A DNA stretch of 64,000 nucleotides from Diadema antillarum (GCF_040938485.1 NW_027270958.1:2046001-2110000); one strand, 5' to 3'; shown: positions 723 through 39,647, numbered from the stretch's first letter. Translations and numbers: made by a program. Notes: generated by a model from the letters alone, not told the origin.

Positions 723-3700
723 ATGAAAACACGTTTGTTTCTACTACTGGGGCTGGGAGTCGTGGGCAGCTGTGGGTTGAACCAGCCGGACGCAGCGGGT
801 TCCCCAGAAGCCTGGAAGTCTCGTATCACTGCAGTGCTTTTCCAAGGCCTGTGCCTATTTCTGGGCTTTGGAATCATGTGCATCTATATACTCTACCAGC
901 CCGTCCCAGCCGGTTTTCCAGAACCCTGGAAATATCGTATGTGTACCGTGCTCTTCCGATGGTTTAGACGAAAGGTAGGTCTTAAGCCCCTTTTACACTT
1001 TCACGGATTGCTACACGGATGACCACGGATCGTCATCCGTGGTGTTCCGGCATGCAAAATATAAATTTTCCTCTCAGTGCCGGTGTGAATACGATCCCAA
1101 CTGGGTGTCTACACGGACAAGTACGGAGGCTACACGGACAAGTACGGTGCCTACACGGACAAACAAGGAATGAACGCGGACCACAGTGGAAACGATACGG
1201 AGCTAACACGGATATCAAGGAAGGACACGGATGCAACTGGGTCACTTCGCGGTCCTTACACGGATATTACTTTTGCTTTTGCTTTTGATACTTTATCATT
1301 CTCAGGCGACGTACCTCCAGAGCTAAGTACAGTATGCAAGCGCACCAGAAAATCTGCAGCAGCCTACACACTTCTCTGCTTGTCGACAAGATACAGTCAA
1401 ATCTCTTTGTTGCAAACTGTCATTTTCTAGAAAATCTTGACATAAACAAAGAAAAACTAAACAAAACAAATCAAAACACACAAAAAAGCATGGAGGTGTG
1501 TGTGGGTCACTTAAGTTTCTCAGACGGCCACTATACGAACAGTATGAGGGGTTGATGGCTGTACTGATGGGGGAAGATCTGAGCAAATTTCTCTATGGAC
1601 TATTTCTCTGGACTCTATGAGCTTGTATAGGCAAAATACCCTAATTTTTCATCCCGGATGGAGCCGATGCTAATACGGACGTCCCGATGTCTTCACGGAT
1701 TGTCCCGGAATGAGTAGGGAGGCAACACAGAGTAGCCGATGCCTACAAGGAAGGAATACGGAGGCAACACGGAGTAGACGGTGCCAACAAGGAAGAGTTC
1801 GTATTGATTTTCATCCGTGATGTCCGGGATGAAAAATTAAGAAAGCTTGATTTTTTCCGCGGACATGCCGAACGATCAAGAATAATGACAGAAGACTTCA
1901 CGGAGTCAATACAGTACGGATGATCCCGGATCGACGATCCGTGGTCATCCGTGATGCGATCCGTGAAAGTGTAAAAGGGGCTTTATGCCCCAGTCACGTA
2001 GACATCCCGGATCACCCCGGACCACCCCGGATCTGATCTGGGGGTGATGCCGTGTAGCTGCTGTGTTGGTCCGTGTATAATATGTCGTGTTTGTCCGTGT
2101 AGACGCCGCGCTCTTCCGGCCTTATCTGTGTAGCTGCCGTGTTGATACCGTGTGTACAGTCATATCAACGCTCGTCGACACTTCTTCGAGGTCGAAACAA
2201 TCCCGGATCTCCCAGAAATCCCCGGATCACCGTGTAGATCGTTGAGGATCCGTGTTTATATGTGACTGGGGCCTGAAGCCTGACGTCCCAGCCACATATA
2301 AACACGGATCCTCAAGGATCTACACGGTGATCCGAGGAGATCTAGGATAGTTTCGACCGCGATAATCAACACTGCAGCTACACGGCAGCCACATAGACCA
2401 TCCCGGATTGCTCTGCCAACACGGCAACCCCCGGATGACGCCGGACGGTTTTGACCTTCAAAAGTTGCCGTGTTGGCCTCACGGATGTCCCCGGATCTAC
2501 ACGGACATACACGGATGTCCAAGGATGTCCAAGGCGTCAACATGGATCTCTCCCCAGATCAGATCCGTGGTGGTCCGGGATGATCCGGGATGTCTATGTG
2601 ACCGGGGCTTACCATAATCAAGACGAATTGCATGTCTATCACCAGGGGCTGATCAAGGAACCACAGCGAGCCCAAGCTTCTGTGCCTCTAGTGCCCTGGT
2701 TATGACCCACCATTTCCTTCTCCTTCCCTCTTTCTTGTCCATTTCGGACTTACTACCTTCCTCACTAATCTTTCTACCTACTTATCTTTTCTTCCCTTAC
2801 AAGAGAGCTGCCTCGTCATTATTAATGTGCGTCCTTGTGTGTGCATGTACATATTATGTGTTTACTGTCTGTCTTTTTTTTTCTATCTGTTAGGCAAATT
2901 GTCTTTTTTTTCTTTGCAATTTGCTTTTTCCCTTTTTTATGAGGGGACTGCATACTACAAGCTCTGCTTTTTGCAGTCCCCTCAATTTCCAGCAATTTTG
3001 TTTCTGACTTTACCATAATGATATAACATTTATTTGTATCTCTGTTAATAATTAACCTGTGTCTTTATTACTTATTGTTATCTTCATCACATTGTACCGA
3101 TTTCGTGACATTATCTCTATTATGCAAATATTTCATTGTATTCCTAATTATTTTGTTTGAAATGAAATAAATCAACTTAAAACATAGTCTTGAACCGTTC
3201 AGAGGGGGCGCCTACGAAATTAGGGGGGGGGCGTACGCGCCCCTCCCCAATATTTGCTTTTTATTTATTTTGTTATGACCAAAAAAAATAAATAAATAAA
3301 GCGGAGGGGGAGAGGGGGGACCTGTCCGGCCAACCTAGATCTGTCACTGATTACGTAATGCTTCTTTACCTGTTTTTCTGACATCACTTTTGCCTGTCAT
3401 TATTGACGTACAGAAATAATGAAAGGTATATAAACATAATATAATTATATAATTCGGGGTTAAAGTGTGTATCATTACTTAATATCTTAATAGACAACAT
3501 GGCATTTAAGAGGAGATGTATCATATCAATCATCCACCTTAAGCTTCAATGTTAATTCTTCATGTCGTAGATCTTCATAAAACTGTTCCTGAGACATCGC
3601 CAGCGTCCTTCGGAGCTTCAAATCCTGAAAGAGACGATGAAATCGATGCTCAACGACACGCCGGAGCCACAGGAAGAGGTTCCTGGGTCAAACATCAGGT

Positions 3701-6700
3701 CTCGTCTGACGTCATTCGGAGGTGTGAAAGTCAGAGTGTATGAGCCGAAGAATAGGGACCCGGAAGCAACTCTGCCAGCTTTGCTTTATCTCCATGGGGG
3801 CGGCCTCACGATAGGACACATAGGTACGGGACCGTACAGTCCTTGATCAATAAACTCTCTACCAATGGTGAACGGTTATGTTACATTTGTTACGTTCTGC
3901 GTTTACGGAAAAAAAACATAGAAAGATACCCATTTCATAGCCAGCAGCAATCGTTAACTCACATGGTCATCATCTGCATCATTTTCTGGAAATTCCAATT
4001 ATTTATGCATATTTTTTTCGTTCACTCTGCAGATATGTGCGATGGAGACCTGCGCATGCTCAGTGAACGTCTTGGAGTAGCCGCAGTGGCTGTGTCGTGA
4101 GTTTCTTACGAGTTTCTTATTTTAGCCAAGTGTTTCAATTCATCAATGGCTTATAATACATATTTCATGCATAAAATAATGTGTGTGGGTTTCGCAATGA
4201 CACAAAGACAGTCACACACGCACACACATGCATTATACTCATAGGTTATATAAGACACGCAAGTGAATATAATATGCACTGTAACATCAAAATCAACGGT
4301 CTAGGTCACTGTGGAAGTCTTTCAGAGCTAAGATTTGTTTCTTGTACATTTACTATGGTTTTAACATTGTACACATGGGGCAGAAAAAAACAAACAGACC
4401 TGTGCTCTGCGTTGAAGGGACAGACACGATTTTATTGTTCTGTCTCCTGCCCCCTCTGTGACCACTGATGTTTGATTTTGAAAGAATAACTCGTAATGCA
4501 ACTTTCGAAGAGCAACCCGGTTAGACGAAACTTGTTACGCACGTGTCCTATGCCAAGTCCAGAGGAGTCCGTTGAGCGCCTGGTAGTCCGTTGAGGGCCA
4601 TTTGATCGCGCTGGGCTCGCTTCTCTCGCCCGTCATAGCCATCATAACAGTGAGAGGGCCTTGACAAAACGGGATAGGATCTAGAAAGGTAGAAAGCACA
4701 GTGAGAAAGGCACTTCGATCTGAACACAGCGAATGTAAAGCCCAGCAGTTTCCAGAAGCTATCTGTATACAAATGACGCACAGGTCTGAGTGCGTCAGTC
4801 GGAATTGTGTGCATTAGGTAACTACGGAATGCTTAACCCAGGAAGGCGAAGCCGAGTGGGTTTAGGCTAAATTCCATAGATACCGCATGCACACTTTAAA
4901 TTCCGACTGACGCAAGAAAAGACATGTGTGTAATCTGTTTTATAGAATGGGTGATTTTCTTGCCAGAAACCCATTTTTCTATCGTGTTACCCGTTGAAAA
5001 ATTCAATGGATGCATTTCCTTTTGGATTGCCAAAAACGAGAGCCCGAAAAAGATGCATCAGTTTTTACTGGACGCATCGTTTTTCTTCAGAAGCAAGCAT
5101 CCAGTAAAAATTATAGAATGGGTAGCGAGAACCCTGCGATCTCATTGGTCGAGAGAGCGATGTGTTGATTTTTACTGGCCGCACGCTGAGTCAGAATGGT
5201 AAACATGTTATCGCGCACTTATAGCAAGAGTACGCGTACTTGTAACAAAGGTTCGCGCACGAAGGAAGCGTTCGCGCACTCAGTACGAGACGCCTATTGG
5301 CTAAAACAACCATGCATCAGTATACAAAAATGACGCACAGGTCCGAGTGCGTCAGTCGGAATTGTGTGCATAAAGCCCCCGTCACACTAGAGCGTATCGA
5401 GCGAACGAATGTCCAGCGGATCCGAAAATTTGGAGATACGCTCACATCCGTTGCTCGTCGTTCGTGACCCGCTTGACGTTCGCTGTATCCGCTAGCTGTT
5501 CGCAGAGATTCGCAGAGATCCGCCGGAGCCAAATTTCGATTTTGGACATGTCTAAAATCTTGAGCGGATGACGAACGGAATGACAATCCGCTCTGTGTTC
5601 GCTTAGCATCCGCTGATCGAAAGTTTTGGTCGCTCTGCATTCGTTTCTTGTTCGTCCGCCGTTCGTCCAAATTCGCTCAGCAAATTTCAACAGCAACGCA
5701 CGTTAAATAAACGTAGCAGAAAAAAATAGATATTCATAGCACACATAATAATAATAATGATAATAATAACAAAAATAAAAAAGGTCTTATTTACCCAGCG
5801 TAGCCTCTTCAGTGTTACCACTGCTCTACCAGAGGGCCCTGCTATTGTTATTAAATTAAATTCAACTTTTGTTGTATCTTTCACTGATGGGGTGGAACAC
5901 CCTCGTCAGCCAAAGGCTGATTTTCAGAGGGGTCAACACATACAGGTTAAAAATACAAATATTATACATAAAGTGTGACAAGGATATACATCACATAATT
6001 CAAAGAGCACGAAACAAGGTATAAGCACCATGATAGCTTGTGTCAGACAGAAAAGAAGAAAAAGGAAAGAAAAAAAATTATCGACAAGGCCTTAGATTAC
6101 AACATTAAAAAAATACGGGCATTTGACACTGAATTTCAAATATAGACAAGGGACTGAAGAAATTATTACCCTAGCGTTGCCAGGTATCCATTTACACCTG
6201 GGTCGATATCGTAGGTAAAAAAATCTTGCCCAAGGATGTAAGGAGTGGGCGGTAATCGAACCCGGGTCCTCTAATCGGAAGTCGGGACTCGGGAGTCTTA
6301 TCCACTATGGCACACCCCCTACACCCCCTACATGACATTATTATACGTATGTAAATGGTAGGTAATAATTGCGTTGGCAGTGCTTATATCGACTACATTA
6401 TTCTAAGCAGCTGCTATAAAAGTCAACCTGTGGTAAATTGGAATCTCTGCATGGAAATTTGGAATTGTGAAAGTTCGACTCCAGTTGGAGGCACCAGACG
6501 CAATGAAGGATGTTGGACTACCAATATCATGCGTCAACGTGATCATCAGAAAGGAAGTGCAGTTTTATCGGAAAATCTTGAGGACTGTCGAGGGTAGTGA
6601 CATCAGGGGGTGTTTAATCAACGTTTGTCGGCGCTGACAACTTGAATCACCATAGTAACAGTCAGTGACCAGAGCATCTCAGCCAATAAAACCAAGGATT

Positions 6701-25900: not shown

Positions 25901-28900
25901 TTACAGTGCGTATCATAAGTAATTCTGTTTAAAAATACAATCCGACACGAAGGCTACGTTCATCATCAGATACATTCTTACTCCAAACACCAAGAGTAAA
26001 ACATGGGTATGGTGATCGTGCTTTTTCCGTTATGGGACCAAAATTGTGGAATCATTTACCTCTAGAGTTAAGGGAACTGTCATCTACAGAGCCATTCAAA
26101 TCCAAACTTAAAACTTATCTGTTCCTTTCATACTGAGGACTGTAATTGCTGTATGTCATTGATATTGGATCAATATTGTATTTTAATTGGTATATGTTGT
26201 ATTCTTTAATTGGTATATATTTGTTTTTGTTTACCGTTTTCTTCTTTGTTGAAATGTTTGAATACATGTATGTATATGCATGTGAATGATATCTTTTCAT
26301 TTTTGAAGCGCCATGAGCACTGAAAAGTGGACCTGTGCGCTATACAAGTAGCCACTATTGTTATTATTATTATTATTATAGATAAATGCATAATGGCACT
26401 TGAGTGTATAGGATATATGAACTTACGTGTATATTTGCTTTGTTCATTCTTGAAATCCAGAAGCAGCAATGTTTTTGTGGGTTTTTTTTTTTTGTTTAGT
26501 TTGTGTACCACAGTGCGTTCCCAAACGTTATTTTTTTCTTGCCACTCATAATGGTCAGCTTTATTTGAAAAGTATATTTAGGCAACATCCCACAATCTGT
26601 TCTCGTTTCCTTTAATCTTTGTGATCGTGATGTGTCGTTATAGTATGGTCTCAAGATGCTCATACGTGACTTCCGGCGCCCTTCATCTTCATACGAAGTG
26701 ATGATGGAGGCATGGAGCAAGAACATGACATCGACGCCGATTCCGCCAGCAGAAGTCCCCGGGTCGAACATCAAGTCCCGCCTGGATTCTTTCGGTGGGA
26801 TAAAGGTCAGGGTTTACGAACCAAAAGACAGGGTGCCTGGCGTACCCCTTCCCGCTTTCCTGTACCTACATGGAGGAGGGTTAGTCATCGGAACCATAGG
26901 TACATTGTAGGCCTAACTCTAACTGTTTTTAGAGATTAACACAACACTATGCTCCGGTTTATGCTTTGCAGAGGCTATCAGTTGAACTAGATTAAACAAA
27001 ACTGGTATGGAATCCGCCTTGCAAATGAAAACGAAATGCATGCACCACGGCTCTGTGTGTTAAGCTTCCTTACAAGTGAAAACAAGAGTATTATATTTAG
27101 TGTTTGCAGTCACTCGGGAAAATGTACAGGGCTTTCAACAGTGTGACACGCTCCGCTGAATCTGTACAGATATCCGTCATAGCCTTATTTCAGCCTAAAT
27201 TTAAAGCAGTCTCATAGCTTTTTTTGTGTGTGTCGGAAAATCGCTTCTCAATGAACCCATTGAAGACGAGTCACGAGTATACTCATGTAAAGATGTTAAT
27301 GGGAAATGCTTGTTGTATGGCAAAATCAGCCCGTCCTTAACGATTAAGCTAAAGAGAGAGAACGTACGTAACCACTATTCCTATTTAAATTTTGAGCATT
27401 TTATCTTTTTGAACTCCTTCCCGAGGTAAACCTTAATAGGCCTAAAGCACATTCGAGCACTTAGTGAACTGTATGGTATAAGAGTAAATACGTATAAATG
27501 CATATATGTGACTGAATTCAAGACTAAGCACAATAAATTCGTCATAACATTCAATGCGTGGATTCTTTTGACGTGCGTAGAATGCGATTGTGTCTCACTA
27601 CCATATGACTACGACATTCTTGTGCTCCTTATTTTTTATAGGGAGAGTTCACTTAGGCCCCAAATAATCAAACATTTAGCGTTTTATAGCACTCCTCTTT
27701 CTTCCTGTGCAATGTCTTCCAAATATTCTTCCAAATAATGAAACATTTCGTTTTATAGCACTCCTCTTTCTTCCTGTGCAATGTCTTCCAAATATTCTTC
27801 CAAATAATGAAACATTTCGTTTTATAGCACTCCTCTTTCTTCCTGTGCAATTTGAGATTACTCTGTCTAGCAAACGTTATTAACTATGTAATATGAGAGG
27901 TTTAATAGAATTGTTATGGGAACCTTTCATATAACTAAAGTAAATCCACCGTAATATCTTGACTACCTCTTATCTCTTCTTTTTCCCCCTCCAAATATAG
28001 ACTTTTATGACAGAGGTGTGCGCATGATCACCGAACGTCTCAACATCATTGGAATTGCTGTGTCGTAAGTGATCTCATTAGGAGTACGAAAGTATCAGAA
28101 TGCTCTCTCCACAATAAGTGAAACAAAAGACTTCCTTTTCAGCCTCAGGTTTAGGAGATGCTAACTTCTATACCCCAAGTATACAAGAATTGCTGCTCTA
28201 CCACACAAATTCCCTCACGTGATATGACTTCCAGTCTTGTAGAAGAAATATTACGGCAGAGAGAGTTTGAAGGCTGATGTGCAATTTGAATGTTAACTAC
28301 ATTGGATGATAATACTGTCTTACCGAAGTAGCTGGCATGTGCGATGCCATAATCACACAACTCTTACGATGAATTCATAAAAGATCAAATTAATGTTCAC
28401 ATCGTGCTTCGAGGAAAAATCTCCAAACTGTGTTCGAGATTTTGTATCGATGTGTTTTGCTCAACCACAGTCAGAGAAATTCAGAGGCAGTTGCCAGTAT
28501 GCATTACTCTACTCTTGCAAGAATTCAGCAACATGTGTAAAGCTCTTCAGTCGCTTTGGAGAAGTTCCACGCTTTATCATCAAGTGAATAATGGAAACAG
28601 ATCTAATGACATAAGTCAATTCAATTCAATTCAAAGTTTATTTCATTTTCCGACAAAACATAAGTTACACTTCTTTTGACAACAGAGAATAAGGTAAACA
28701 GAACATTATGTATTGAAAAGAATGTACAACATTGAGGACCTTATAGTAATTATACATTGTTGTGAAAAAAGAAACAGAAGTGATCGAAATGAGGTACATG
28801 TATAACTTTGCTTAAAGTGCGAAAAATGGAGAGACCCACTAAAAAGACAGAGCTTGTAGAATGTGGGCCCCTCTGGAAAAATAACATCAGTGGGAAGATA

Positions 28901-31900
28901 ATTGAAGCATCATAAATACAAAAGGAAAAAGAAAAGAAAAGAAGAAGAAGAAGTCTGGAAGCCCACTGAGAATTAGATTCACAGATAAATACATTTACTT
29001 TTATAGACGCGAACGAACATAGAAAACGACTAGACAACGAAACAACTACTGAAGAAAAGGTTGTACGGGACAAAACGGAATGGACAAGACTAACAAACAG
29101 AAGACAAAATAGCAAACGAAAATGCACAACAGAGACAGCGATCTCCGACAGAAGCATGTCAAGAGAAACAGATGATAGTTGTGGAGAAAAAAAGTGATAT
29201 TGTAACGCCAGAAAGGAGAAAAGCAAGGAAATGAGGGGACGTATGAACTGGAGTAAGACAGAAATTCAAGTCTTGACGCTTTGGGCGATAGCGTAGATGG
29301 CAGCAGACATCCACTAAAAAGAATACAATTTTTTCTTCAAAGAGGAAAAAAGGTAATTAAGTCAGTAAGTGAGAAAGAAGGCCAAACGGCTAGTTCAGTA
29401 CTGTAGAGTCATACGATTGCAATAGAAAGGACCTCAGTCTCCTCTTGAAAGAATATATAGATGGGGCGTTTTTTATATCATGATTCAAAGAATTCCAATA
29501 ATTTGGGCCTATATAAATAAGTGTATTTTTAGCAAGGATCGTGCGTAAAAGGGGTAAATGAAATTCATTGGAACGCCTAGTGGGATATTCATGAAATGAT
29601 TGGTTTTTGAGGAACATAGAATCAAAAATAGATGGAAGCAAATTGTTGCAATAATTGTACATAAATTGGCCTAAATTATACAAAAACAGATCTTTAATTT
29701 TCAAGAGCTTGCTAGAGGCAAACAACGTGTTTGTATGAGAACGTACAGGGGAATGGCAGATAACGCGGAGGGCTTTCTTTTGCAAGAGGGACACTCTTTC
29801 AAGTAAATTCTGATGCGTGTTGCCCCAAACTAAAACTCCATAATTCAAATGAGGCAATATTAACGACGAATATAACATAAGTAATACTTTTTGTGGAATA
29901 TAAAATTTCAATCTATTTATAACACCTGTATTACGCGATATTATGTTACAAATATTATCAACATGTGATTTCCAGGAAAGTTTATCATCCACAATGACCC
30001 CCAAGAATTTAATATTTGATACTCTTTGTAGATGAGAATCATCTAAAACTATATTTGTGTTTAAATTATCAACAGTATTACTAAAAATCATATATTTTGT
30101 TTTTTGAGCATTGAGTGATAACTTGTTAGCTCTGACCCAGTTGGTCACTTTTTGCAATTCAATATTGATTTTGTGAACGAGAAAATCAATATCGTTATGG
30201 GCGAAAAATACATTTGTATCATCTGCGAAATGAATAAAAGAGAGATCATCAGATACGCGACAAAAATCATTTATATAGATAATGAACAATAACGGCCCTA
30301 AAATACTTCCCTGTGGGACGCCACATTTAACTTCTCTGATAACTGAATCATTATTATTAATTGTAACAAATTGTTTTCTATCGACTAAATAACTCTTGAA
30401 CCACTCCAAGGCCTTCCCACGTACTCCATAATGCGATAACTTATAAAGTAAAATGTCATGATTGATGGTGTCGAAGGCCTTGGAGAAGTCCAAGAAAATA
30501 CTAACTAAATGAGAATGATTATCAATGGCATGAACTACTCTATCAACGAAATATAAAAGAGCATGCGAAGTACTATGTTTTTCACGAAAACCAAACTGAG
30601 AGTTCGTAAAAACTTCATGTACCTTCAAAAAATTGATCATTCTCTTATAAATAAGTTTTTCTAAAACCTTAGACAGTGAGGACAATAATGAAATTGGGCG
30701 ATAATTGCTGACTACAAATTTATCGCCTTTCTTAAATATTGGTATTACTTTAGCCAATTTCATTTTATCGGGAAACACACCGTTAAAAATTGACAAATTA
30801 AATATATGAACAAGTGGATCAGCAATCGAGGAAATAACACCCTTAAGTATAAAATTATCTATCTCATCATAACCAGAACTTCGTTTGTTCTCAAAAGAGG
30901 AAACTATATCAATAATTTCAAATCTATTAGTCGGTGTAAAAAATATGGAATCAGAGTTGCGCTGGCCTAAAAATTCAGTAAAATGAGTTTCTGTTGCAGG
31001 AATAGTTTGAGCATAGTTTTCACCTATTTCTGAAAAATAGGAATTAAAAATATTTGCAATATGAAGAGAATCATTAATCAATTCATCATTCATTTTAATT
31101 TTGTCAATGTCAGAGTTTTTACTCGGAACATTCATGGCCTGTTTTAGAACTTTCCAAGTATTTTTCATATCAAACCTATATCTCGAGAATTGCTTAAAGT
31201 AATATCTTTTCTTTTCAGAACGTAAAATCATTGTCAAAGTATTTTTGTATGATGTATATCTATTCTTCGATCGCTCAGTTTTTTCCAACTTATATTTATA
31301 ATACAAACGATTTTTCCTATTAATTGAACGAAGGATTGATTTTGAGATCCAAGGTAACCTGGGTGTTTTTTTGTAATCTGTTCTATTTTTTTGTTTTGGA
31401 ATTACATCATCTAAATGATGATTGAATATTTCCATAAAATTATGAAAAGATATATTGATATCATCGCTGCCAAACACTCCTGACCAGTCAGCATTCTCGA
31501 GAGCCACATCAAAACTAGCTAACTTTTCGGGTGAAACTCTACGACTAAACAAAGGAAATGAGGGAGGTTTAATATTAGATGAAGTTTTAAGAGTAAAATA
31601 AGTCATTATTGGAAAATGATCAGTCATATCTGAAATAATTAGGAAAGAGTCGGGGAGGGGTAGAATATTACAAAAAATGTTATCAATGAGGGTGGCAGAA
31701 CGATCTGTAATACGTGTGGGTTTGGAAATGAGCGGAAGAAAGGATGAGGATAAAAGTGTGTGAAGAAAATCACTAGAGATATTATCATGCTCAGATTTCA
31801 GCAAATCAATATTGAAATCGCCGAGTAAAAGGCAATCCTTATTTCGGAAAACGTGTGAATTTGCCAAATCTGAATAATAGGTTAAAAAATCATTAGCGTT

Positions 31901-33459
31901 TGAATTAGGAGGTCTGTATACAATGCCTAACATAAGATTTTTACATCCTGGGATGAGGATTTCTATAAACAAAGATTCAACCGTTTCGTCCATTCTAGAA
32001 ATATCTTGATGGACAATAGTTTCAAAGGAACCTGATATGTACAATGCAACACCCCCACCATTCTTATCAGGCCTATTATTAACAAATAAATCGTAACCAT
32101 CAATTGCAAAGGAATTTTCTGCATTAGAAGTTAACCATGTTTCACTTAATCCAATAACCGATAACGATTGACTTTCATCAGATTCTAATAAGTACTTTAA
32201 ATCATCAAAATGTTTATTTAAACTCCTAATATTTAAGTGTAACAAACAAAACGTATCCTCAGAGAAGTTATGAATCATATCTTTGTATTGATTTACTGTA
32301 ATATAATTGCATAACATATTTGAGTGAAATCATTACTAAAATCATGAGGCAATTCATTTGTTCCTGTATTCAGGGTATCGGTAACAAAATCATCATAAGG
32401 GGTGGTTCCTGTACTGGTTAGCCCACTAACTGGGTCAGAGTCTAACCTAGTGTTCCTAAACAATTCAAAAAGTCATCATTCGATACGGAATAAAATGGAG
32501 CATTAAAAAAATTAGCCATGATTAAAGGTACGAGACGAGATTATAAAAGTCTGCGATGTCAACAAAACTAGGATGTCGTAAATAAGTGGATGATACAAGA
32601 AAATAACCAGTCGCCAGAAAGAGGCAAAACACTGGAGTAATCTACAAGTATAAATGGCGTCAAAATCACGATAAGCAGGAGATCGCTGAGGAGAAGAACG
32701 TGAAACGAGAAAGAGCAGAATAAGGTAAGTGAGAACGTTCAGAAGCATCGTCAGAGAAAGACATAGAACACACACAACACAACACAATAACAAGAATAAA
32801 TCAAGTGTCTCTGTGGGCTTCCGAAAGAGGAGGACAGGGATGAGAAGGGAAGTAAAAGAACGAGCTCGACGGCTGTAGTCGAAAGAGGAGAAGTACAAAG
32901 ACGTGAGTTGCGCTAGCGTAAGAATTCAAAGTGCTGCACAGTGCGCAAACTTGTGAATTGCAGCATAGACACACCAACTGAAACTTTGACGGAAAAAAAA
33001 GAATCAGTAAGAGTTCAGTGGAAGCAGTATATATCGACAGCATGAATGGCTGTCCGTGCCAATCATACATTTTTGGCAAAGCCAAACATCCAAAGTTACA
33101 TAAAAGGAAGAAGAAGAAGAAGAAGAAAAAAAAAAAAAAAGAACTCGCCACCTGCAACGTTACCTTTAAATTCTTGATCACAAGGTTCATTGGAACAACA
33201 TTCCATTGGTACTGTCATATGGTACATTATACACGATGTCACGTGGATGTTGCTTAATAGTAATAATGCAAATCAAGAGAAGACATACATACACAGAAGA
33301 TATTACCTAAGATTCATGAGATTCAATATAGAACATGAGGCCTTAAACCATGTCATAGAATTGAAAATATAAAGTGAAAATAGAGGTACTTGGAATTCAA
33401 TAGTAGGACCACTTCAGCAATGTAACCAGGTACATGCATGTTCTGTTCATAATAGTTAA

Positions 33460-33502
<43 letters not shown>

Positions 33503-36500
33503 TTTAATAAAAAAGGAGAAACGCCTTGCGGCAGGTATGGCCTGTCTTTCGTCAAACAAATGAATTCCCGATTAAAAGAACAGTAAGAAATAAAAAGGCT
33601 GAGATTTCATGGTGGGTTATTAGGCTGGGAGGAAAAAAAAATGACCCGTGAACTATTATACCACCCTAAAGGGAGAGGGGAATGACTGCTTGAAATGAAA
33701 GAGTGGCAAGTGTTTTGAAGACACCCGCATACTTTGGATGGAATCATTGATAATAAAATGACAGTTTGAAAATGTTTACAAAGAATACCCCTGACAAAAA
33801 ACGACAACAACAAACAAACATGGGGGTGACCCCAAGGGCTTGACCTATCCAAGGAAAAAAAAAAAAAAAAAAAAAAAGAAACGAAACAGTTTGAATTACA
33901 TGGTGACGCATGGTTATATAATGACACCTTCCAAAAGAGCACCGGGATAAACTTATAGATACATGTGAACAGAAGCCTTTGAGCCGCTCTTCAACCGCTT
34001 GGAAAGCGGGATTGGGGTAGCGTCCTGGAGGACATTAAACACATTTGCAAATAATCGAACTTTGTTGTAGAAATGACACGCTGTACGAGGTCAATGCTTA
34101 ACAATGCAAATCGAGAGTAGACATTACATATACAGAGAAGAGAACATAGGATTCATGTGGTTCAGTGAAACATCGGGTTTTAAAATGCATGTCACGGTCA
34201 TCGATCGTATCTTAGAATTGAAAATAAAGAGAAAATAAGGGTAAGTGTAATTAAATAAACGATTTTGGCGATGTAACAACAGAAAAATAAGAAAAAAAAA
34301 AAGAAATCAGCAACAAGGACTCCCGATTTAAGAACCGAGAGAATCAAAATGGCTAGAAGAATCAGAATGGCTGGTGACACATGACACCTTCAAAAGGGAC
34401 ATCAAGATAAACTGATAAATTCATGTGAACAGGTGCCTTGTCTGCACTTCAAAAGCTTTGAAAGGAGGTAGGAGTAGCGTCCGGAAGGACGTTTAAAACA
34501 CATCACACACATTGCATAGGCAAATAATCAGACAATGTTTAGAAGCGACATGCCATACACAGTCAGTGCTTAACAATTCAAATCAAGTGTAGGCATTTCA
34601 TAAACAAAGAGAAAAGAACCTAGAATTCATTGTGGTCCAATAAAACATCTGGTCATTTAAATGAAGATCGCGGTCGGCCACCGTGTCTAGAATTGGAAAT
34701 AAAAGAGAATAGTGGTATGTGTAAATACAACAGACCCCTTAGCAATGTAACGAGATTCATGCATGTTCTGTTCACAGAGGTTCACAGGAGTTGCCCGTAG
34801 CAACAAAAGGAGAAAAAAAAAGACATGGGGGGGGGGGGGCTTGGCCTATCAGATGTCAAGATAACCAAATGAATTTCCGACTTAAGAACCGAAAGAAACG
34901 AAACAGCTGAATTTCGTGGCGGCACATAGTTACATTATAACACCTTGAAAGAGAACATCTAGATACACTGACAGTGATGAACAAGTGCCTCTGACCGCCC
35001 TTTAACCGCCTTGAAAGGGTGTAGGGGTAACGTCCGGAAGGAGGTTGAACACATTACGTAAGCAAATAATCAGACAATGTTTTAGAAGTGACATACCGTA
35101 CGTAGTCAAAGCTTAAATATACAGAAAAAAAGACATTACAGAAAGCCTTAGCTAGGATTGTTGTGGTTCAATAGAACATAAGGTGTTAAAATGCAGATCA
35201 CGGGCATCAGCCTTGTTATGGAATTGAAAATAAAAAGAAAGTTGGGGTACTTGAAATTCAATAGACCACTACGGCAATGTAACCATATTCATATGTCCTG
35301 TTCACCAGAGCTCACAAAAGTTGCCCATAGCAACCAAAAAACATTGTGAGGCGTGGCCCGACTATAACATCAAACAAGTGAATTCCAAGCAGAAGAGGCA
35401 AAAGATACGAAACAGCTGGATTACTAGGCTGTTGGAAAAAAAAAAAAAAACATGAACTAAATACCACCCTAAAAAAGTGGTCTAATGGTGGTAAGCTCTG
35501 AAAATATAGACAATTGCAAAAATACCATACAAAGAGTGGCGGGTTTTTGCGGTGGGCTCTGCACACTTCGGGTAAAAGTGCTGATAATGTTCTAAAATTT
35601 TCAAAGAACACCCCTAAAATGCCTAACATGGTGTTTTAAAATGTGAAGAAAATAGGGGTACATGTGGATGTAATTCAATAGACCATTTTGAACAGTGTAA
35701 CGAAACTCTTGCATGTCCTGTTCACGAAAATTCACTAGAGTTGCCCATTTACGTGGGAACGTAGTGAAAAACGGATTGAGTAAAGTATAATAGGGACCAA
35801 AAAATAAATTGTAAGAGGCCTGGCTTGGCCTGTCTATAACGTCATAGATGTGAACGTCAAAGAAGTGAATACCAAGCTTATGGGCCCAAAGAAACGAAAC
35901 AGCTGAACTACTTAATGCCCGGGGGCATATTGCTGTTAGGAACAGAGACGCCGGTGAACTAAATATCACCTTAAAAAAAAAGAGCGGTCAAATGATGGTA
36001 AGCACTGAATGCGGCAGATACCATGCAGATAGTAGCATTTGTTTTGTTTTGTTTCTCTCTTTTCGGTGAGCTCCCCACCCTTTGGATGAAAGTGCTAACA
36101 ATGTGACTATTCTAAAATTCAAATTGTCTTGAGGGACGTTAGACAACTATTAACATAATCCTCAGAGGAGGAGATGTAGCACAGGTACAAGAATAGTAGG
36201 ACAAAAGAAAAAAAAATGTCGGTTTTATAATCAATATTTAAAGTTGTGATTCAAATTGCGCCGCATCTTAAGTATCGGGGTAAAAGGAATAGTACGTGGC
36301 ATGGCGAGTACGTCAAAAACAATTATTATAATTGAAAAATTACTTGTACTATATGATACCCTGTTGGGCGTTAGAAAATAATTGATTGTTATTTATATAC
36401 GAATAAAAAAAAATATACATATATATATAATGCCTGGGGTAGATTAGGTGAAGGGTGGACAAAATTTAAACAGTAAAATTATTTATTTATCTATTTATTT

Positions 36501-39500
36501 TTCACAATGCATGGACTAAAATCCTAAGAAATCACACCAAGGTGTACTTATAATTCAACATCTCTGAACATAAGAAAAATGGCAAAACCGTGGGTAAACC
36601 ATAATATATCATAAATACTGGGTATATCGTTGATTGAGGGGTGAATAAGGAGGGAAATTATGATTATTACCGTTAAAAATATATATGTTTGGTTTTTTTT
36701 TTTTGATAAAACGTTTGTCTTTACGTGTGTAAATAATAACTCATGATAATTTCAATATTGGAAAAAACTCAGTAAAAGGCATTCAAAGGAGAAAAGGGTT
36801 GCTTAGCTTGGTGTCGTAACATTTGATAAAAATGAAATAAGAATGTGGCCATCCTTTGTGATACTATTACACTGTGTTGCTCACAAGTAGTGGCGTGCAG
36901 AAACGCGTAGTCGATAGAAGTGTACAGTGTTTCTCTTTGTGTACCTATCAAATGGACAGCAACGTTTATCAGAGTTATTCAATAAACTTATCATTACTAA
37001 CTTCACACATAGTTTTATATAGAGGAAAAGAACAAAGGACTCATCTGCATATTGCATGTGATGCGTATCATAGGAATACACATATATGCAAAATGAACGA
37101 CAATAGACGAAAACGTATATAAAGACAAATGAAAAGTACTGATTCAACTTGATTGAATTACAATGACATTTTTTTTTTTAATGTGGAAAGGGTATTACAT
37201 TTAGGCCTACGAAAACCACAGAAGAAATTTGTGACTTTACCTCTTCATATTACAATCATAGGTATTCGAATAATTGGAGCAACGGTCAATCCGACCAGGT
37301 AGACCAGGCGGAAGATGGCTCGTTTGGATGTTTGGTCATGAGAACTACTTTGGCACCACGAACTGCTATTTTTGTTTTCAGATTCTTGGTCTTGCGGAGA
37401 TTGTATGCGATGGATGCTAAACGGCCGCGTTCGCGTTTCATCCTCGGGGGGAGGTCGGTGCGGACCGTGATGCGGACCCGTGCTGGGGACTTCTCGGTGG
37501 CGTTCCTTGGGCGTCGCGGTTGCTCGAAAGCACGAAGCAAGTTGTCACGATCACTCATCCTCGCAAAGCGGACTATGATGGGGTCCGGAGGTTCAGGGGC
37601 GTTGGTAGCGCCAATGGGGGTACTCTTGGTGGGGAGACGATGGATGTTAACCACCGGGATCTTCATCGCTTCCTCTGTTGAAATTTCCAGAAGGTGGGCG
37701 AACGCCTTCGCTGCTTCTTGATAAACATTCTCGTTTGGGTGGGATACAATGCCGTAGAAAAGCAAATTTTGTTTGCGGTGGTGAAGCTCTTGTTGAATAA
37801 GCTTGTCTTCAAATTCGGCCTTCATTTGATTTAGTTGCCGCTGAAGTTCCGGGATTTTCTCGGCCTCAACGGATTGGATCCTCGCAGACGTGTCGGCGAC
37901 CGAACCTTCAAGGTCCTGCATAGTGGATTTCACTGTGGCAATATCGGTTTTTACGGCATTCAGATCAGAAATAACGTGGTCCAGTTTGTTATTAATTTCC
38001 GTCTTGAAATCCGCAAACATGTTTCGTAGTTCAGAAATGATAGCGTGACCAGTATCTGATGGAACGTTGGGGGCCTGCTCAGAATCGCCTCGGCGGCTGG
38101 TGGGGTGTGGTTGGTGGGGCATGCCGGGTCTACTCGCCGAAGGCCTGCCAATTGACGAGGAAGCACTCACCGGTCTAGGTTGAGGGGGTGTGCTGACAGA
38201 AGTTCCGCGGGGATTTTTGTCCTTTTGCACGGTAGATTTACGGAAATTATAGGCAGAGCTTCCTTTAATTGGTCCAGTGTTCATATTTCTGTAGCTGCAA
38301 TAAAGATTTAGGTAGCATTAAGGTATGCAGTTCATAGTAGCTGGGTGTTGAAGGAGCTAGCTGCGCCCCACGTCCGTCTCGTTAGCCGGCCATGCGTACA
38401 TCAAGTAATTGAATATTACATAAGTAATTGAATCTAAGTTGTGTCACATATAGGGGGCGCTGTACATAAAAGACTCCCGACTCCCAATTGGAGGACAGAG
38501 GACAAGAGTTCTATCGCGTCCTTGGACAAGATGTTTTTACCCATGAAATGGGTACCTGGCAAAGCTAGGGTAATAATAATGGTAGGGCCCCCTGGGAGAG
38601 CAGTAGCAAAAATTATTGTTATTGTTATCATTATTATTATCATCATCATCATCATCATCCCCATTATTATCACTATCATTATCATTATCATTATCTTTAT
38701 CTTTAGAGACTCGTGGTTTACTTGCCTTATGAAAGTGTTAAACACAGCGGTAGACCGTTCATTACGAAAATTATATATGATCATAATGATCTCGGTATAA
38801 TTTCTTCTTCTGTATCCTGTCTTTCTTTCCTGTCTTTTTTTTAACCAGATATCGGTTGGCTCCACAACATACTTTCCCTGCCGCCTTCGACGACACCTTT
38901 GCAGCAACGAAGTGGCTGCTTTCACACGCAGAAGAAGTCGGCGTTGATCCCGGCAGGGTAGCGCTCATGGGAGACAGTGCTGGAGGGCTCCTCACAGCGG
39001 CTGTGTCGGCAGCGATTGCAGACGATCCTTCGGTGCCCGACATCAAGCTTCAAGTCATGCTCTACCCGTGGTTGCAGAGTCTGGACCTGAACACACCGTC
39101 GTACCAGAAGATGAGGCAAGCCAAGTTTGGCACGTTGATGGATGTCGTCAACCTCATGCCGAACTTCATGAGCGCGGCAGTGCTGGGCAGCACGGACAAG
39201 TCCATTGTGGGACAAATATCCACCAATCAGCACACGTCAGGAGATTTCAAACGTTCGTTGCCGTATCGAACATTTCTTGACCACTCCATCATACCATCGC
39301 ATATGAAGCCAGCCTGTTATCGACCACCGTCGCCGGACGACGACGACGAGGGGAATGAGAAGACCTGGGAGAGCATGAAAGACGTGCTGACATCGTTGGA
39401 GTTTTCGCCGCTCTTACGTGAGGACATGACAAAGCTGCCGCGCACCTTCATAGCCACATGTGGTTACGATGTTCTTCGGGATGATGGTATTTTCTACGCA

Positions 39501-39647
39501 CACAGACTGAAGAAGGCAGGGGTGCCTGTCGAGTGGGTGAACTATGAAAATGGATATCACGGCATACAGTGGGTCGGCGACAGCGCTTTTGTGATTGGAC
39601 GACAGATGGCAAACGACTTCATAAAGTACACTAAAGAACATCTCTGA
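22909..39647 (+). CDS. AADAC/NCEH1-like hydrolase, paralog 3; join(22909..23046,26644..26899,28001..28064,38849..39647), 418 aa
   Basis: Single signal anchor MAVFMYIVIGLVMLCCYFLY followed by KPVPSGFPDPWKYR; LHGGG; IAVS|YRLAPQH; GDSAGG; GYDVLRDDG; GYHG; phases 0/1/2; GT-AG introns. Confidence 0.92.
23797..25044. mobile_element. Helentron-associated non-autonomous element (HINE/DINE-1-like)
   Basis: Terminal inverted repeat ATTACGC-GGT-GCGTAAT; perfect 11-bp subTIR TGTCCCCGCCG (23825) / CGGCGGGGACA (25030); (GGAC/ACAC)n microsatellite; terminal hairpin; internal satellite. Confidence 0.78.
23845..24920 (+). repeat. ~7-unit 148-158-bp tandem array (GGTCAAAGGTCAA-rich)
   Basis: GGCGAAGGAGTAGC recurs at 23980, 24131, 24289, 24440, 24598, 24755 and 24903. 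Confidence 0.92.
25132..26380 (+). pseudogene. Degraded L2-clade LINE 3' end (RT C-terminus plus tail)
   Basis: SRLDFSNSL..KLERLQNSAARLL..PVLRSLHWL..RIVFKILLL, then after the nested MITE FSVMGPKLWNHLP..PFKSKLKTYLF; (ATT)n tail at about 26360. Confidence 0.8.
25376..25908. mobile_element. CACTA/EnSpm-type MITE
   Basis: CACTGCAAAAA...TTTTTACAGTG termini, 2-bp TSD CG, AACACC/GGTGTT repeats; second copy at 58529-59058. Confidence 0.85.
27660..27851 (+). repeat. 69-bp tandem repeat, about 2.7 copies
   Basis: CAAATAAT at 27661, 27732 and 27801; near-identical units. Confidence 0.9.
28617..32519 (-). mobile_element. CR1/L2-group (Crack/Daphne-like) LINE: ORF2 plus long 3' UTR, antisense in intron 3 of paralog 3
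   Basis: AATAAA followed by a (TTGAA)n tail ending at 28617; ~770-bp pyrimidine-rich 3' UTR; ORF2; a frameshifted probable N-terminal extension MANFFNAPFYSVSNDDFLN up to 32519. Confidence 0.88.
29390..32317 (-). CDS. LINE ORF2: AP endonuclease plus reverse transcriptase, 975 aa uninterrupted
   Basis: APE motifs HLNIRSL, LSETWL, GGGVALY, IVYRPP, GDFNIDL, LIDNIF and TDHFPI. RT motifs NYRPISLL, QFGFR, FLDFSKAFDTINH, GVPQGSILGPLLF and FADDT. Confidence 0.95.
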   Translation of the reverse strand: MLCNYITVNQYKDMIHNFSEDTFCLLHLNIRSLNKHFDDLKYLLESDESQSLSVIGLSETWLTSNAENSFAIDGYDLFVNNRPDKNGGGVALYISGSFETIVHQDISRMDETVESLFIEILIPGCKNLMLGIVYRPPNSNANDFLTYYSDLANSHVFRNKDCLLLGDFNIDLLKSEHDNISSDFLHTLLSSSFLPLISKPTRITDRSATLIDNIFCNILPLPDSFLIISDMTDHFPIMTYFTLKTSSNIKPPSFPLFSRRVSPEKLASFDVALENADWSGVFGSDDINISFHNFMEIFNHHLDDVIPKQKNRTDYKKTPRLPWISKSILRSINRKNRLYYKYKLEKTERSKNRYTSYKNTLTMILRSEKKRYYFKQFSRYRFDMKNTWKVLKQAMNVPSKNSDIDKIKMNDELINDSLHIANIFNSYFSEIGENYAQTIPATETHFTEFLGQRNSDSIFFTPTNRFEIIDIVSSFENKRSSGYDEIDNFILKGVISSIADPLVHIFNLSIFNGVFPDKMKLAKVIPIFKKGDKFVVSNYRPISLLSSLSKVLEKLIYKRMINFLKVHEVFTNSQFGFREKHSTSHALLYFVDRVVHAIDNHSHLVSIFLDFSKAFDTINHDILLYKLSHYGVRGKALEWFKSYLVDRKQFVTINNNDSVIREVKCGVPQGSILGPLLFIIYINDFCRVSDDLSFIHFADDTNVFFAHNDIDFLVHKINIELQKVTNWVRANKLSLNAQKTKYMIFSNTVDNLNTNIVLDDSHLQRVSNIKFLGVIVDDKLSWKSHVDNICNIISRNTGVINRLKFYIPQKVLLMLYSSLILPHLNYGVLVWGNTHQNLLERVSLLQKKALRVICHSPVRSHTNTLFASSKLLKIKDLFLYNLGQFMYNYCNNLLPSIFDSMFLKNQSFHEYPTRRSNEFHLPLLRTILAKNTLIYIGPNYWNSLNHDIKNAPSIYSFKRRLRSFLLQSYDSTVLN
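33250..36000. repeat. Highly degenerate ~470-550-bp tandem array (at least 6 units)
   Basis: Recurring landmarks GAATTG(A/G)AAATA (about 33358, 34215, 34690, 35221), GA(A/T)ACGAAACAG (about 33876, 34891, 35404, 35890) and CAT(G/A)T(T/C)CTGTTCA-like words. Confidence 0.75.
37286..38284 (-). CDS. LINE ORF1p-like protein (coiled coil plus RRM plus CTD; L1/Transposase_22-type), 332 aa
   Basis: Pro/Ser-rich N-terminus, heptad coiled coil (ELRNMFADFKTEINNKL...), RKQNLLFYGI, IHRLP, PIIVRFARMSDRDNLL and RTDLPPRMKRERGRL; GC-richer than the flanks; no stops. Confidence 0.85.
   Translation of the reverse strand: MNTGPIKGSSAYNFRKSTVQKDKNPRGTSVSTPPQPRPVSASSSIGRPSASRPGMPHQPHPTSRRGDSEQAPNVPSDTGHAIISELRNMFADFKTEINNKLDHVISDLNAVKTDIATVKSTMQDLEGSVADTSARIQSVEAEKIPELQRQLNQMKAEFEDKLIQQELHHRKQNLLFYGIVSHPNENVYQEAAKAFAHLLEISTEEAMKIPVVNIHRLPTKSTPIGATNAPEPPDPIIVRFARMSDRDNLLRAFEQPRRPRNATEKSPARVRITVRTDLPPRMKRERGRLASIAYNLRKTKNLKTKIAVRGAKVVLMTKHPNEPSSAWSTWSD
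38453..38700 (+). mobile_element. Degenerate tRNA-derived SINE
   Basis: AAGACTCCCGAC...CCTTGGACAAG...AAATGGGTACCTGGCAAAGCTAGGGTAAT...GGGCCC; (ATT/ATC)n tail; matches the reverse complement of 5726-6318. Confidence 0.7.

Follow-up and report, generated by a model that had tools for sequence, protein, structure and literature searches.

Introduction

How the second open reading frame (ORF2) is translated from the RNA of a bicistronic long interspersed nuclear element (LINE) is a long-standing question, and in the elements on which earlier work rests the two genes overlap or lie no more than about 1 kb apart. Across surveyed vertebrate L1 elements, the inter-genic region measures 26-1,032 bp, and in fish it is AT-rich with T-rich repeats (PMC5381506), and a review gives the L1 inter-ORF distance as 'hundreds of bases' (PMC3894237). 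Reinitiation across gaps of a few hundred bases has already been doubted for L1 (PMC3894237, PMC5381506). The window analysed here is a 64,000-nt stretch of the genome of the sea urchin Diadema antillarum (GCF_040938485.1 NW_027270958.1:2046001-2110000). Positions 28617-38417 of the window, minus strand, are very probably a single copy of one LINE of 9.8 kb, here called LINE-A, with an inter-ORF gap ~5 times the longest in the vertebrate L1 survey (PMC5381506). LINE-A is a young, very recently active, endonuclease-type retrotransposon without long terminal repeats (non-LTR).

Fish L2 elements end in short tandem repeats. In the stringent L2 elements of fish (UnaL2, ZfL2-1, and ZfL2-2), the ORF2 protein (ORF2p) is thought to recognise a specific 3′ tail, not poly(A) (PMC4176376). 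Several subgroups of CR1 and L2 are already known to carry a type II ORF1 protein (ORF1p) (Metcalfe and Casane 2014, PMC4120745), and a term search of that paper yields no mention of an inter-ORF spacer. In a literature search, Repbase not covered, no description of a LINE whose ORFs lie several kilobases apart was found. LINE-A is recently active, has near-identical copies and an empty site for one of them, and offers a natural test of how a second gene is expressed. Annotation software tuned to LINEs of ~4-7 kb may record such an element as two things, an 'orphan ORF1 gene' and a 'truncated LINE'.

Genomic copies and insertion sites

An earlier note, made from the window sequence alone, had proposed one full-length young LINE with its ORFs ~4.8 kb apart, and had named co-occurrence at other loci and empty sites as checks. 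Both checks were run, and recurrence, truncations, and empty sites support the proposal. When all 9,801 bases were searched against the genome, C142, C1894, and C46 each proved to hold the complete unit at ≥99% identity, with ORF1, spacer, and ORF2 colinear over 9.8 kb. Flanks of the C1894 and C46 copies are unrelated to the window flanks. At least nine truncated copies lacking the 5′ part were found; they begin at element positions 1454, 3667, 3670, 4337, 4703, 5256, 5275, 5947, and 7171, and all reach the tail; eight of these nine starts fall between the two ORFs as the note had bounded them. Scattered starts with one common tail are the classic 5′-truncation pattern, which argues for a single RNA template.

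The C46 copy has an empty site on C1483, where both flanks abut (C1483:12487/12490) and the whole 9.8 kb is absent. By comparison with that site, the C46 copy carries a 4-bp duplication (TAAT) and 29 extra 5′-junction bases that partly copy the element's own 5′ end. The C1894 copy sits inside another repeat, and paralogues of that repeat on C541 and C1376 are unbroken at that point. In the window, the candidate target-site duplication named in the note, ACATAAGT on the plus strand, stands directly after the tail (28609-28616) and again at 38418-38425. Chance alone would bring a given 8-mer back this close to the 5′ end (about 60 nt or less) ~1 time in 1000. By analogy with the C46 copy, the 8-bp duplication and the 20 extra 5′ bases at 38398-38417 are plausible. 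Across copies, target-site duplications measure 4-8 bp or are absent, and most truncated copies have no clear duplication at the junctions examined.

LINE-A therefore has the marks of a LINE: a shared 3′ end with variable 5′ truncation, no terminal repeats in a self-comparison (internal 0.5-kb units are the sole repeats), and target-site duplications with empty sites (C46 against C1483, the C1894 paralogues, and the 8 bp of the window). Its insertions have the pattern of target-primed reverse transcription from the tail: duplications are short, 5′ truncation is frequent, and the 5′ junction shows extra bases or microhomology. The whole 9.8-kb unit is mobilised as a single RNA.

Several points weigh against this reading. 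Most whole-genome searches scored a fraction of the candidate matches, and copy numbers here are lower bounds. Flanks of the C142 copy are 100% identical to those of the window copy (C70) over 2.1 kb, so C142 is the window locus assembled twice or very recently duplicated, and lineage A, to which these copies belong, has three independent full-length insertions, not four. The flanks on C1483 and C46 share 92% identity only, and the C1483 site may be a paralogue rather than the other allele, although in either case the site is empty.

Relative to the window copy, the other copies show 5-13 substitutions per 8.4-8.5 kb. Every full-length copy retains an intact ORF1, and ORF2 is open in 11 of 11 other copies checked.

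Three further observations were made at these loci. A truncated lineage-A copy on C493 ends in a shortened GAATT repeat followed by A14 at the 3′ junction, unlike all others. A ~250-bp repeat with >1,000 candidate copies at 93-95% identity, resembling a short interspersed nuclear element (SINE) in size and abundance, lies 350 bp downstream of the C46 LINE (C46:1857292-1857542). The 5′ flank of the C46 insertion holds an abundant ~380-bp repeat (C46:1845907-1846291) with thousands of first-look candidates at about 80% identity.

Element organization

The features of the window copy, in window coordinates, are as follows.

28609-28616, minus strand: 3′ copy of the candidate 8-bp target-site duplication, ACTTATGT on the element strand and ACATAAGT on the plus strand
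28617-28634, minus strand: 3′ microsatellite tail TTGAATTGAATTGAATTG, (GAATT)n, a repeat of variable length that ends every copy in three lineages
28637-28642, minus strand: AATAAA, just upstream of the (GAATT)n tail on the element strand
28617-29389, minus strand: 3′ untranslated region (3′UTR), 773 nt, 44% T
29390-32317, minus strand: ORF2 as open in the window copy, 975 aa, with endonuclease at aa 29-217 and reverse transcriptase at aa 529-776
32318-32519, minus strand: first 68 codons of the family's 1,043-aa ORF2, out of frame in the window copy alone
32520-32824, minus strand: conserved 305-nt leader of the ORF2 module, its 5′ edge at element position 5594, TCGGAAGCCCACAGAG
32825-37285, minus strand: lineage-specific non-coding spacer, 4,461 nt, T-rich
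33348-35338, minus strand: three to four degenerate tandem units in the spacer, ~0.47-0.53 kb each, 70-77% identical
33461-33499, minus strand: T39 run on the element strand
37286-38284, minus strand: ORF1, 332 aa, with disordered N-terminus, coiled coil at aa 78-170, RNA recognition motif (RRM), and C-terminal domain (CTD)
38285-38397, minus strand: 5′UTR, 113 nt, opening with the conserved terminus ACGCATGGCCGGCTAACGAG
38398-38417, minus strand: 20 extra 5′-junction bases, a near-copy of neighbouring flank
38418-38425, minus strand: 5′ copy of the candidate 8-bp target-site duplication, matching the 8-mer at 28609-28616

The span given in the note holds at the tail end. At the other end, the conserved family 5′ terminus ACGCATGGCCGGCTAACGAG lies at window 38397 and is common to three loci (window, C1894, and C46), with the 20 junction bases beyond it. 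Similar termini occur in a related family of another sample and in Diadema setosum.

ORF1 at 38284-37286 is open in the window on the minus strand (332 aa), as the note had stated. The ORF2 frame it gave as intact (32317-29390) is open for 975 aa, but the family ORF2 has 1,043 codons and the window copy is frameshifted. In ten other lineage-A copies spanning the start (C142 included), ORF2 is 1,043 aa and starts at the equivalent of window 32519. In the window copy, and in none of the others, a T run (32467-32471) and an A run (32319-32321), read on the element strand, are each short by one base, and these two differences put the first 68 codons out of frame and make the longest ORF start from an internal ATG. 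Because the family ORF2 begins 68 codons further upstream, the inter-ORF distance is 4,766 nt (4,461 lineage-specific plus the 305-nt leader) and not 4,968 nt.

Six one-base indels, but not one substitution, separate C70 from C142 over 8.5 kb, so the homopolymer differences may be assembly consensus errors, which can create false frameshifts in otherwise intact genes. The assembly size is 1.75 Gb, about twice the 885.8 Mb reported for the Diadema setosum genome (PMC11066563), and the assembly therefore probably contains both haplotypes.

T-richness, which the note had ascribed to the whole interval, is confined to part of it. On the element strand, T content is 38.6% in the spacer (GC 37%), 36% in ORF2, and 44% in the 3′UTR; the 5′UTR and ORF1 are not T-rich (GC about 50%, T 20%).

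Two neighbours of the LINE were noted. A 263-aa open frame at window 38856-39647, plus strand, ~440 bp past the LINE 5′ end, matches Abhydrolase_3 (E 1e-40) and is probably an exon of an esterase paralogue, which would place the LINE antisense, intronic or just upstream. Between the LINE and this exon lies an imperfect (GAT/AAT)n trinucleotide block (window 38600-38720).

Proteins and classification

ORF2 encodes an apurinic-type endonuclease followed by a reverse transcriptase (RT), the order found in LINEs (Pfam Exo_endo_phos, E 1.8e-9; RVT_1, E 2.8e-40). In the ESM Atlas, it falls in generic endonuclease-RT clusters. The RT matches L1 and R2 proteins in PDB; the best match is human L1 ORF2p (E 2.7e-18), in the RT region only. 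This weak match places the LINE outside the L1 clade. Neither a close ORF2 match across domains nor a poly(A) tail, as expected of that clade, was found, the tail being a microsatellite.

NCBI lists the ORF1 product as an uncharacterized protein. ORF1 has no PF02994 match at E ≤0.01 and matches weak coiled-coil families only. A profile of 43 ORF1 homologues matches human L1 ORF1p (2ykp, E 6e-5). The AlphaFold model (predicted local distance difference test score 80) has a disordered N-terminus, a 93-residue helix (aa 78-170), and two alpha/beta domains, and its Foldseek top ten are human L1 ORF1p trimer and RRM-CTD structures (2yko, 2ykp, 2ykq, 2ldy; E 7e-8 to 6e-6). By profile match and predicted fold, ORF1 is a type II ORF1p (coiled coil, RRM, CTD), a structural relative and not a Pfam member. 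At least 59 ORF1 homologues were found; those with a named source belong to D. antillarum (a protein of 99% identity), D. setosum, and Lytechinus variegatus. The D. antillarum genome holds >1,100 ORF1 candidate loci, most with open frames.

LINE-A is a candidate member of the CR1/L2 group by its microsatellite tail, short duplications, endonuclease-RT ORF2 of ~1,000 aa, and weak match to L1 ORF2p. As in that group, the 3′ end is a short tandem repeat, (GAATT)n, and duplications are short or absent (4-8 bp or none). 'Stringent' L2-type elements would be expected to have a 3′ stem-loop, and none of significance was predicted: folding of the terminal 120 nt gave -15.4 kcal/mol (z = 0.0 vs shuffles). 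The 3′UTR is nevertheless 94% identical between lineages A and C over its last ~70 nt.

Sister lineages

At least eight copies at 87% identity all begin matching at element position 5594 and share an upstream sequence of their own. Extension of that sequence led to lineage C, which is 9,897 bp long and encodes a 334-aa ORF1 at the same offset, with 33% aa identity to that of lineage A. Its spacer of 4,850 nt cannot be aligned with the lineage A spacer and holds two or three copies of a 436-bp tandem repeat. At least 10 lineage C copies reach the 5′ end. In lineage B, ORF2 is 92% identical and a third upstream sequence is joined at the same nucleotide (5594). On C289 and C541, an ORF1 homologue in the same orientation precedes the lineage B copy by 4-5 kb, and lineage B probably shares the long-spacer layout.

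Between lineages A and C, ORF2 identity at codon positions 1, 2, and 3 is 93.8%, 95.8%, and 80.8%, which indicates purifying selection on ORF2. The first 68 ORF2 codons are 92.1% identical. The conserved ORF2 module, the fixed 5594 boundary, and the unalignable upstream modules argue for an exchangeable cassette: on these sequence comparisons, ORF2, leader, and 3′UTR have been recombined as one block onto different ORF1-plus-spacer modules at a single fixed point. Such exchange exemplifies the reticulate evolution of ORF1 known from CR1/L2 elements (PMC4120745). Neither a tail nor a target-site duplication was found at the internal module boundary.

At a D. setosum locus, ORF1 is followed by a degraded ORF2 across a 3.9-kb gap that contains internal repeats. 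In ENA contigs with ORF1 homologues, gene tables hint at ~3-kb gaps but are ambiguous. A Lytechinus variegatus locus is uninformative on layout, its ORF2 being on the opposite strand.

Other observations concern these same loci. At the D. setosum locus (on OZ188195.1), two 925-bp direct repeats, 100% identical (16863-17787 and 19070-19994 of the stretch analysed), bracket ~1.3 kb inside the degraded ORF2 and look like a very young nested LTR-type insertion. At the Lytechinus variegatus locus (on CM031029.1; 11336-14257 of the stretch analysed, minus strand), an intact 974-aa endonuclease-RT ORF, 37% identical to the ORF2 of LINE-A, lies between two ORF1 homologues. Just upstream of a lineage C element, C723:10683-12204 holds RT fragments of a different LINE with about 66% nucleotide identity to ORF2.

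Expression of ORF2

With >100 AUGs over 4.8 kb, ORF2 is out of reach of scanning or reinitiation after ORF1, and this route was rejected; ATGs are undepleted in the spacers of lineages A (111 observed vs 79 expected) and C (133). An internal promoter, an internal ribosome entry site, or splicing remains, and the note's claim that ORF2 would need one of these was judged reasonable.

Internal initiation on full-length RNA, directed by the conserved leader, ranks first, as a tentative choice short of an even chance. ORF2 would be translated from the full-length RNA by initiation at the leader. Because LINE proteins tend to copy their own encoding RNA, this route best accounts for continued full-length copies. 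The leader's identity between lineages A and C (85.9%) exceeds that at ORF2 third codon positions (80.8%), which counts in favour, but the excess is modest, and the predicted leader structure shows covariation in three of 55 pairs, among four distinct lineages only. A conserved RNA structure in the leader was rejected, there being almost no covariation.

A second promoter, or a subgenomic ORF2 RNA from near the module boundary or the tandem repeats, ranks second and is somewhat unlikely. A composite with two transcription units could also be considered, at a similarly low level of belief. The 4.2 kb from 5594 would then be a complete single-ORF LINE with the 305-nt leader as its own 5′UTR and promoter, and the 5.6-kb ORF1-plus-spacer module would be carried upstream of it. 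Three lineages switch partner at the identical nucleotide, as expected if 5594 is a physical RNA 5′ end from which the RT jumps to another template. Single-ORF L2 elements such as ZfL2-2 have been studied by retrotransposition assays (PMC4176376). CpG observed/expected is 0.84-0.99 near element positions 5200-5800 vs 0.5-0.75 mid-spacer, and both spacers (A and C) carry tandem repeats reminiscent of mouse L1 promoter monomers. However, no lineage-A copy among those scored starts at 5594, the starts being scattered (5256, 5275, 5947, and others). ORF1 offset and total length are also constant across lineages, which points to a selected unit rather than a passenger.

Clustered truncation points were considered as a sign of an internal start and rejected, since the pairs 3667/3670 and 5256/5275 are independent insertions. 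The junction of the 3670 copy lies in a 10-nt microhomology, and the 5275 copy begins in a T run.

ORF1 and ORF2 might instead have separate RNAs, with a promoter in the repeat-bearing spacer driving an ORF2 RNA that begins at 5594; this is unlikely. RT reaching the 5594 end would then jump onto the ORF1-plus-spacer RNAs of other lineages. If true, it would explain the identical swap point in three lineages and the retention of a multi-kilobase spacer, and LINE-A would be a LINE with a dedicated internal ORF2 promoter and an inherent means of shuffling its modules.

Excision of the spacer as an intron ranks third and is doubtful. Splicing from a donor shortly past ORF1 to an acceptor within the leader would yield a bicistronic mRNA of conventional form with a ~200-nt gap, and the unspliced RNA would be the copied template. 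As an acceptor-like motif, lineages A, B, and C all conserve a pyrimidine tract with CAG after it, at ~element position 5733 and 166 nt ahead of the ORF2 start. A donor-like GAG/GTAAAG (cut at the slash) is present in lineage A about 40 nt past the ORF1 stop. However, the corresponding place in lineage C offers no similar donor, and a sequence of 39% T would be expected to contain pyrimidine-rich acceptor look-alikes by chance. The spacer is present in every one of at least 17 ORF1-bearing copies (lineages A and C), although LINE proteins favour their encoding RNA. A search for strict canonical donor and acceptor patterns found none common to A and C; the acceptor-like leader motif stays a lead. 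Some other mechanism of ORF2 expression takes up the small probability left over.

Origin of the inter-ORF region

The tandem units of about 0.5 kb were found by self-comparison at element positions 3080-5070; Tandem Repeats Finder misses them. A pair of AATAAA motifs lies at element positions 1919 and 1931, ~0.8 kb past ORF1. Searches of the spacer found no Rfam family and no tRNA. The five longest sense ORFs (105-129 aa) have no Pfam match, stop codons are undepleted, and no ORF is conserved between A and C (tblastx), and hidden spacer ORFs were rejected on these grounds. Origin of the spacer as decayed ORF2 or ORF1 is not supported, the best tblastn hit with three ORF2 proteins and ORF1 having E of about 0.5.

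The two spacer halves were searched separately with all candidates scored (10/10 and 40/40), and both matched solely copies or older relatives of the lineage-A LINE. Spacers of the older relatives are 70-88% identical; in an older copy on C544, ORF1 is 93-97% identical and the spacer 78-88%. Because the spacer is confined to LINE-A copies and these older relatives, it appears to have evolved with the family, and on this evidence it is an old, fast-evolving family part and not nested foreign DNA. The long spacer is a lasting family trait and not an accident of the window copy, since one sister lineage, probably two, has the same layout with near-equal length and unrelated spacer sequence.

An ordinary short-spacer LINE inflated by nested insertions of other transposons is highly improbable. 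Whole-element searches returned thousands of first-look candidates, a point in its favour, but both spacer halves are found solely in LINE-A copies and older relatives, the spacer has no RT, ORF1, tRNA or Rfam signal, and the lineage C spacer is unrelated yet of nearly equal length. Assembly of the spacer from other repeats was likewise rejected, its halves being confined to the LINE-A family.

Chance adjacency of two unrelated elements, an ORF1-bearing fragment upstream of an independent 5′-truncated ORF2 LINE, is the least credible explanation and was rejected for the present-day element: the composition gap (ORF1 GC about 52% vs ORF2 GC about 32%) and the joining of the ORF2 module to other upstream sequences in lineages B and C agree with it, but the colinear 9.8-kb unit recurs at independent loci with a common 5′ terminus and tail, truncation points are scattered across the spacer, an empty site lacks the whole unit, and the internal boundary has no tail or duplication. 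Juxtaposition of two elements may nevertheless be how the composite first arose.

Comparison with known elements

Monomers of the mouse L1 5′UTR lie upstream of ORF1 and are a proven promoter. The spacer repeats of the sea-urchin LINE are likewise tandem, fast-evolving, lineage-specific non-coding units whose copy number varies between copies; unlike the mouse monomers, they lie between the ORFs.

A conventional bicistronic layout, from overlap to ~1,000 nt between the ORFs, is seen in neither lineage A (4,766 nt) nor lineage C (4,850 nt). Vertebrate L1 elements with long inter-genic regions (fish, frog, lizard clade 2, opossum, and afrotherians; PMC5381506) resemble LINE-A in being bicistronic with a coiled-coil/RRM/CTD ORF1. 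In both, ORF1 is GC-richer than ORF2, and the inter-ORF region is AT-rich, variable in sequence, and conserved in presence (PMC5381506). Both raise the question of how ORF2 is translated (PMC5381506). Unlike that of vertebrate L1, the sea-urchin ORF2 is distantly related and about 230 aa shorter, and the element ends in a 5-nt microsatellite, not poly(A).

Stringent L2 elements of fish offer a parallel at the 3′ end: in LINE-A the last ~70 nt are the best-conserved non-coding part (94%). Unlike fish L2 elements (3-5 kb), it measures 9.8 kb and has no significant predicted 3′ stem-loop.

LINE-A also resembles CR1/L2 LINEs with a Transposase_22-type ORF1, which likewise combine a type II ORF1 with a Jockey-superfamily-style ORF2 (PMC4120745). 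In those elements, as here, whole ORF1 modules were swapped between lineages and ORF2 evolved in a tree-like manner. The route proposed there, insertion of a 5′-truncated ORF2 copy behind the ORF1 of another element, agrees with the fixed boundary of the sea-urchin element (PMC4120745). With ORF2 and its 305-nt leader exchangeable at that boundary, LINE-A and its sister lineages provide a clear natural case of LINE module shuffling with defined fragments.

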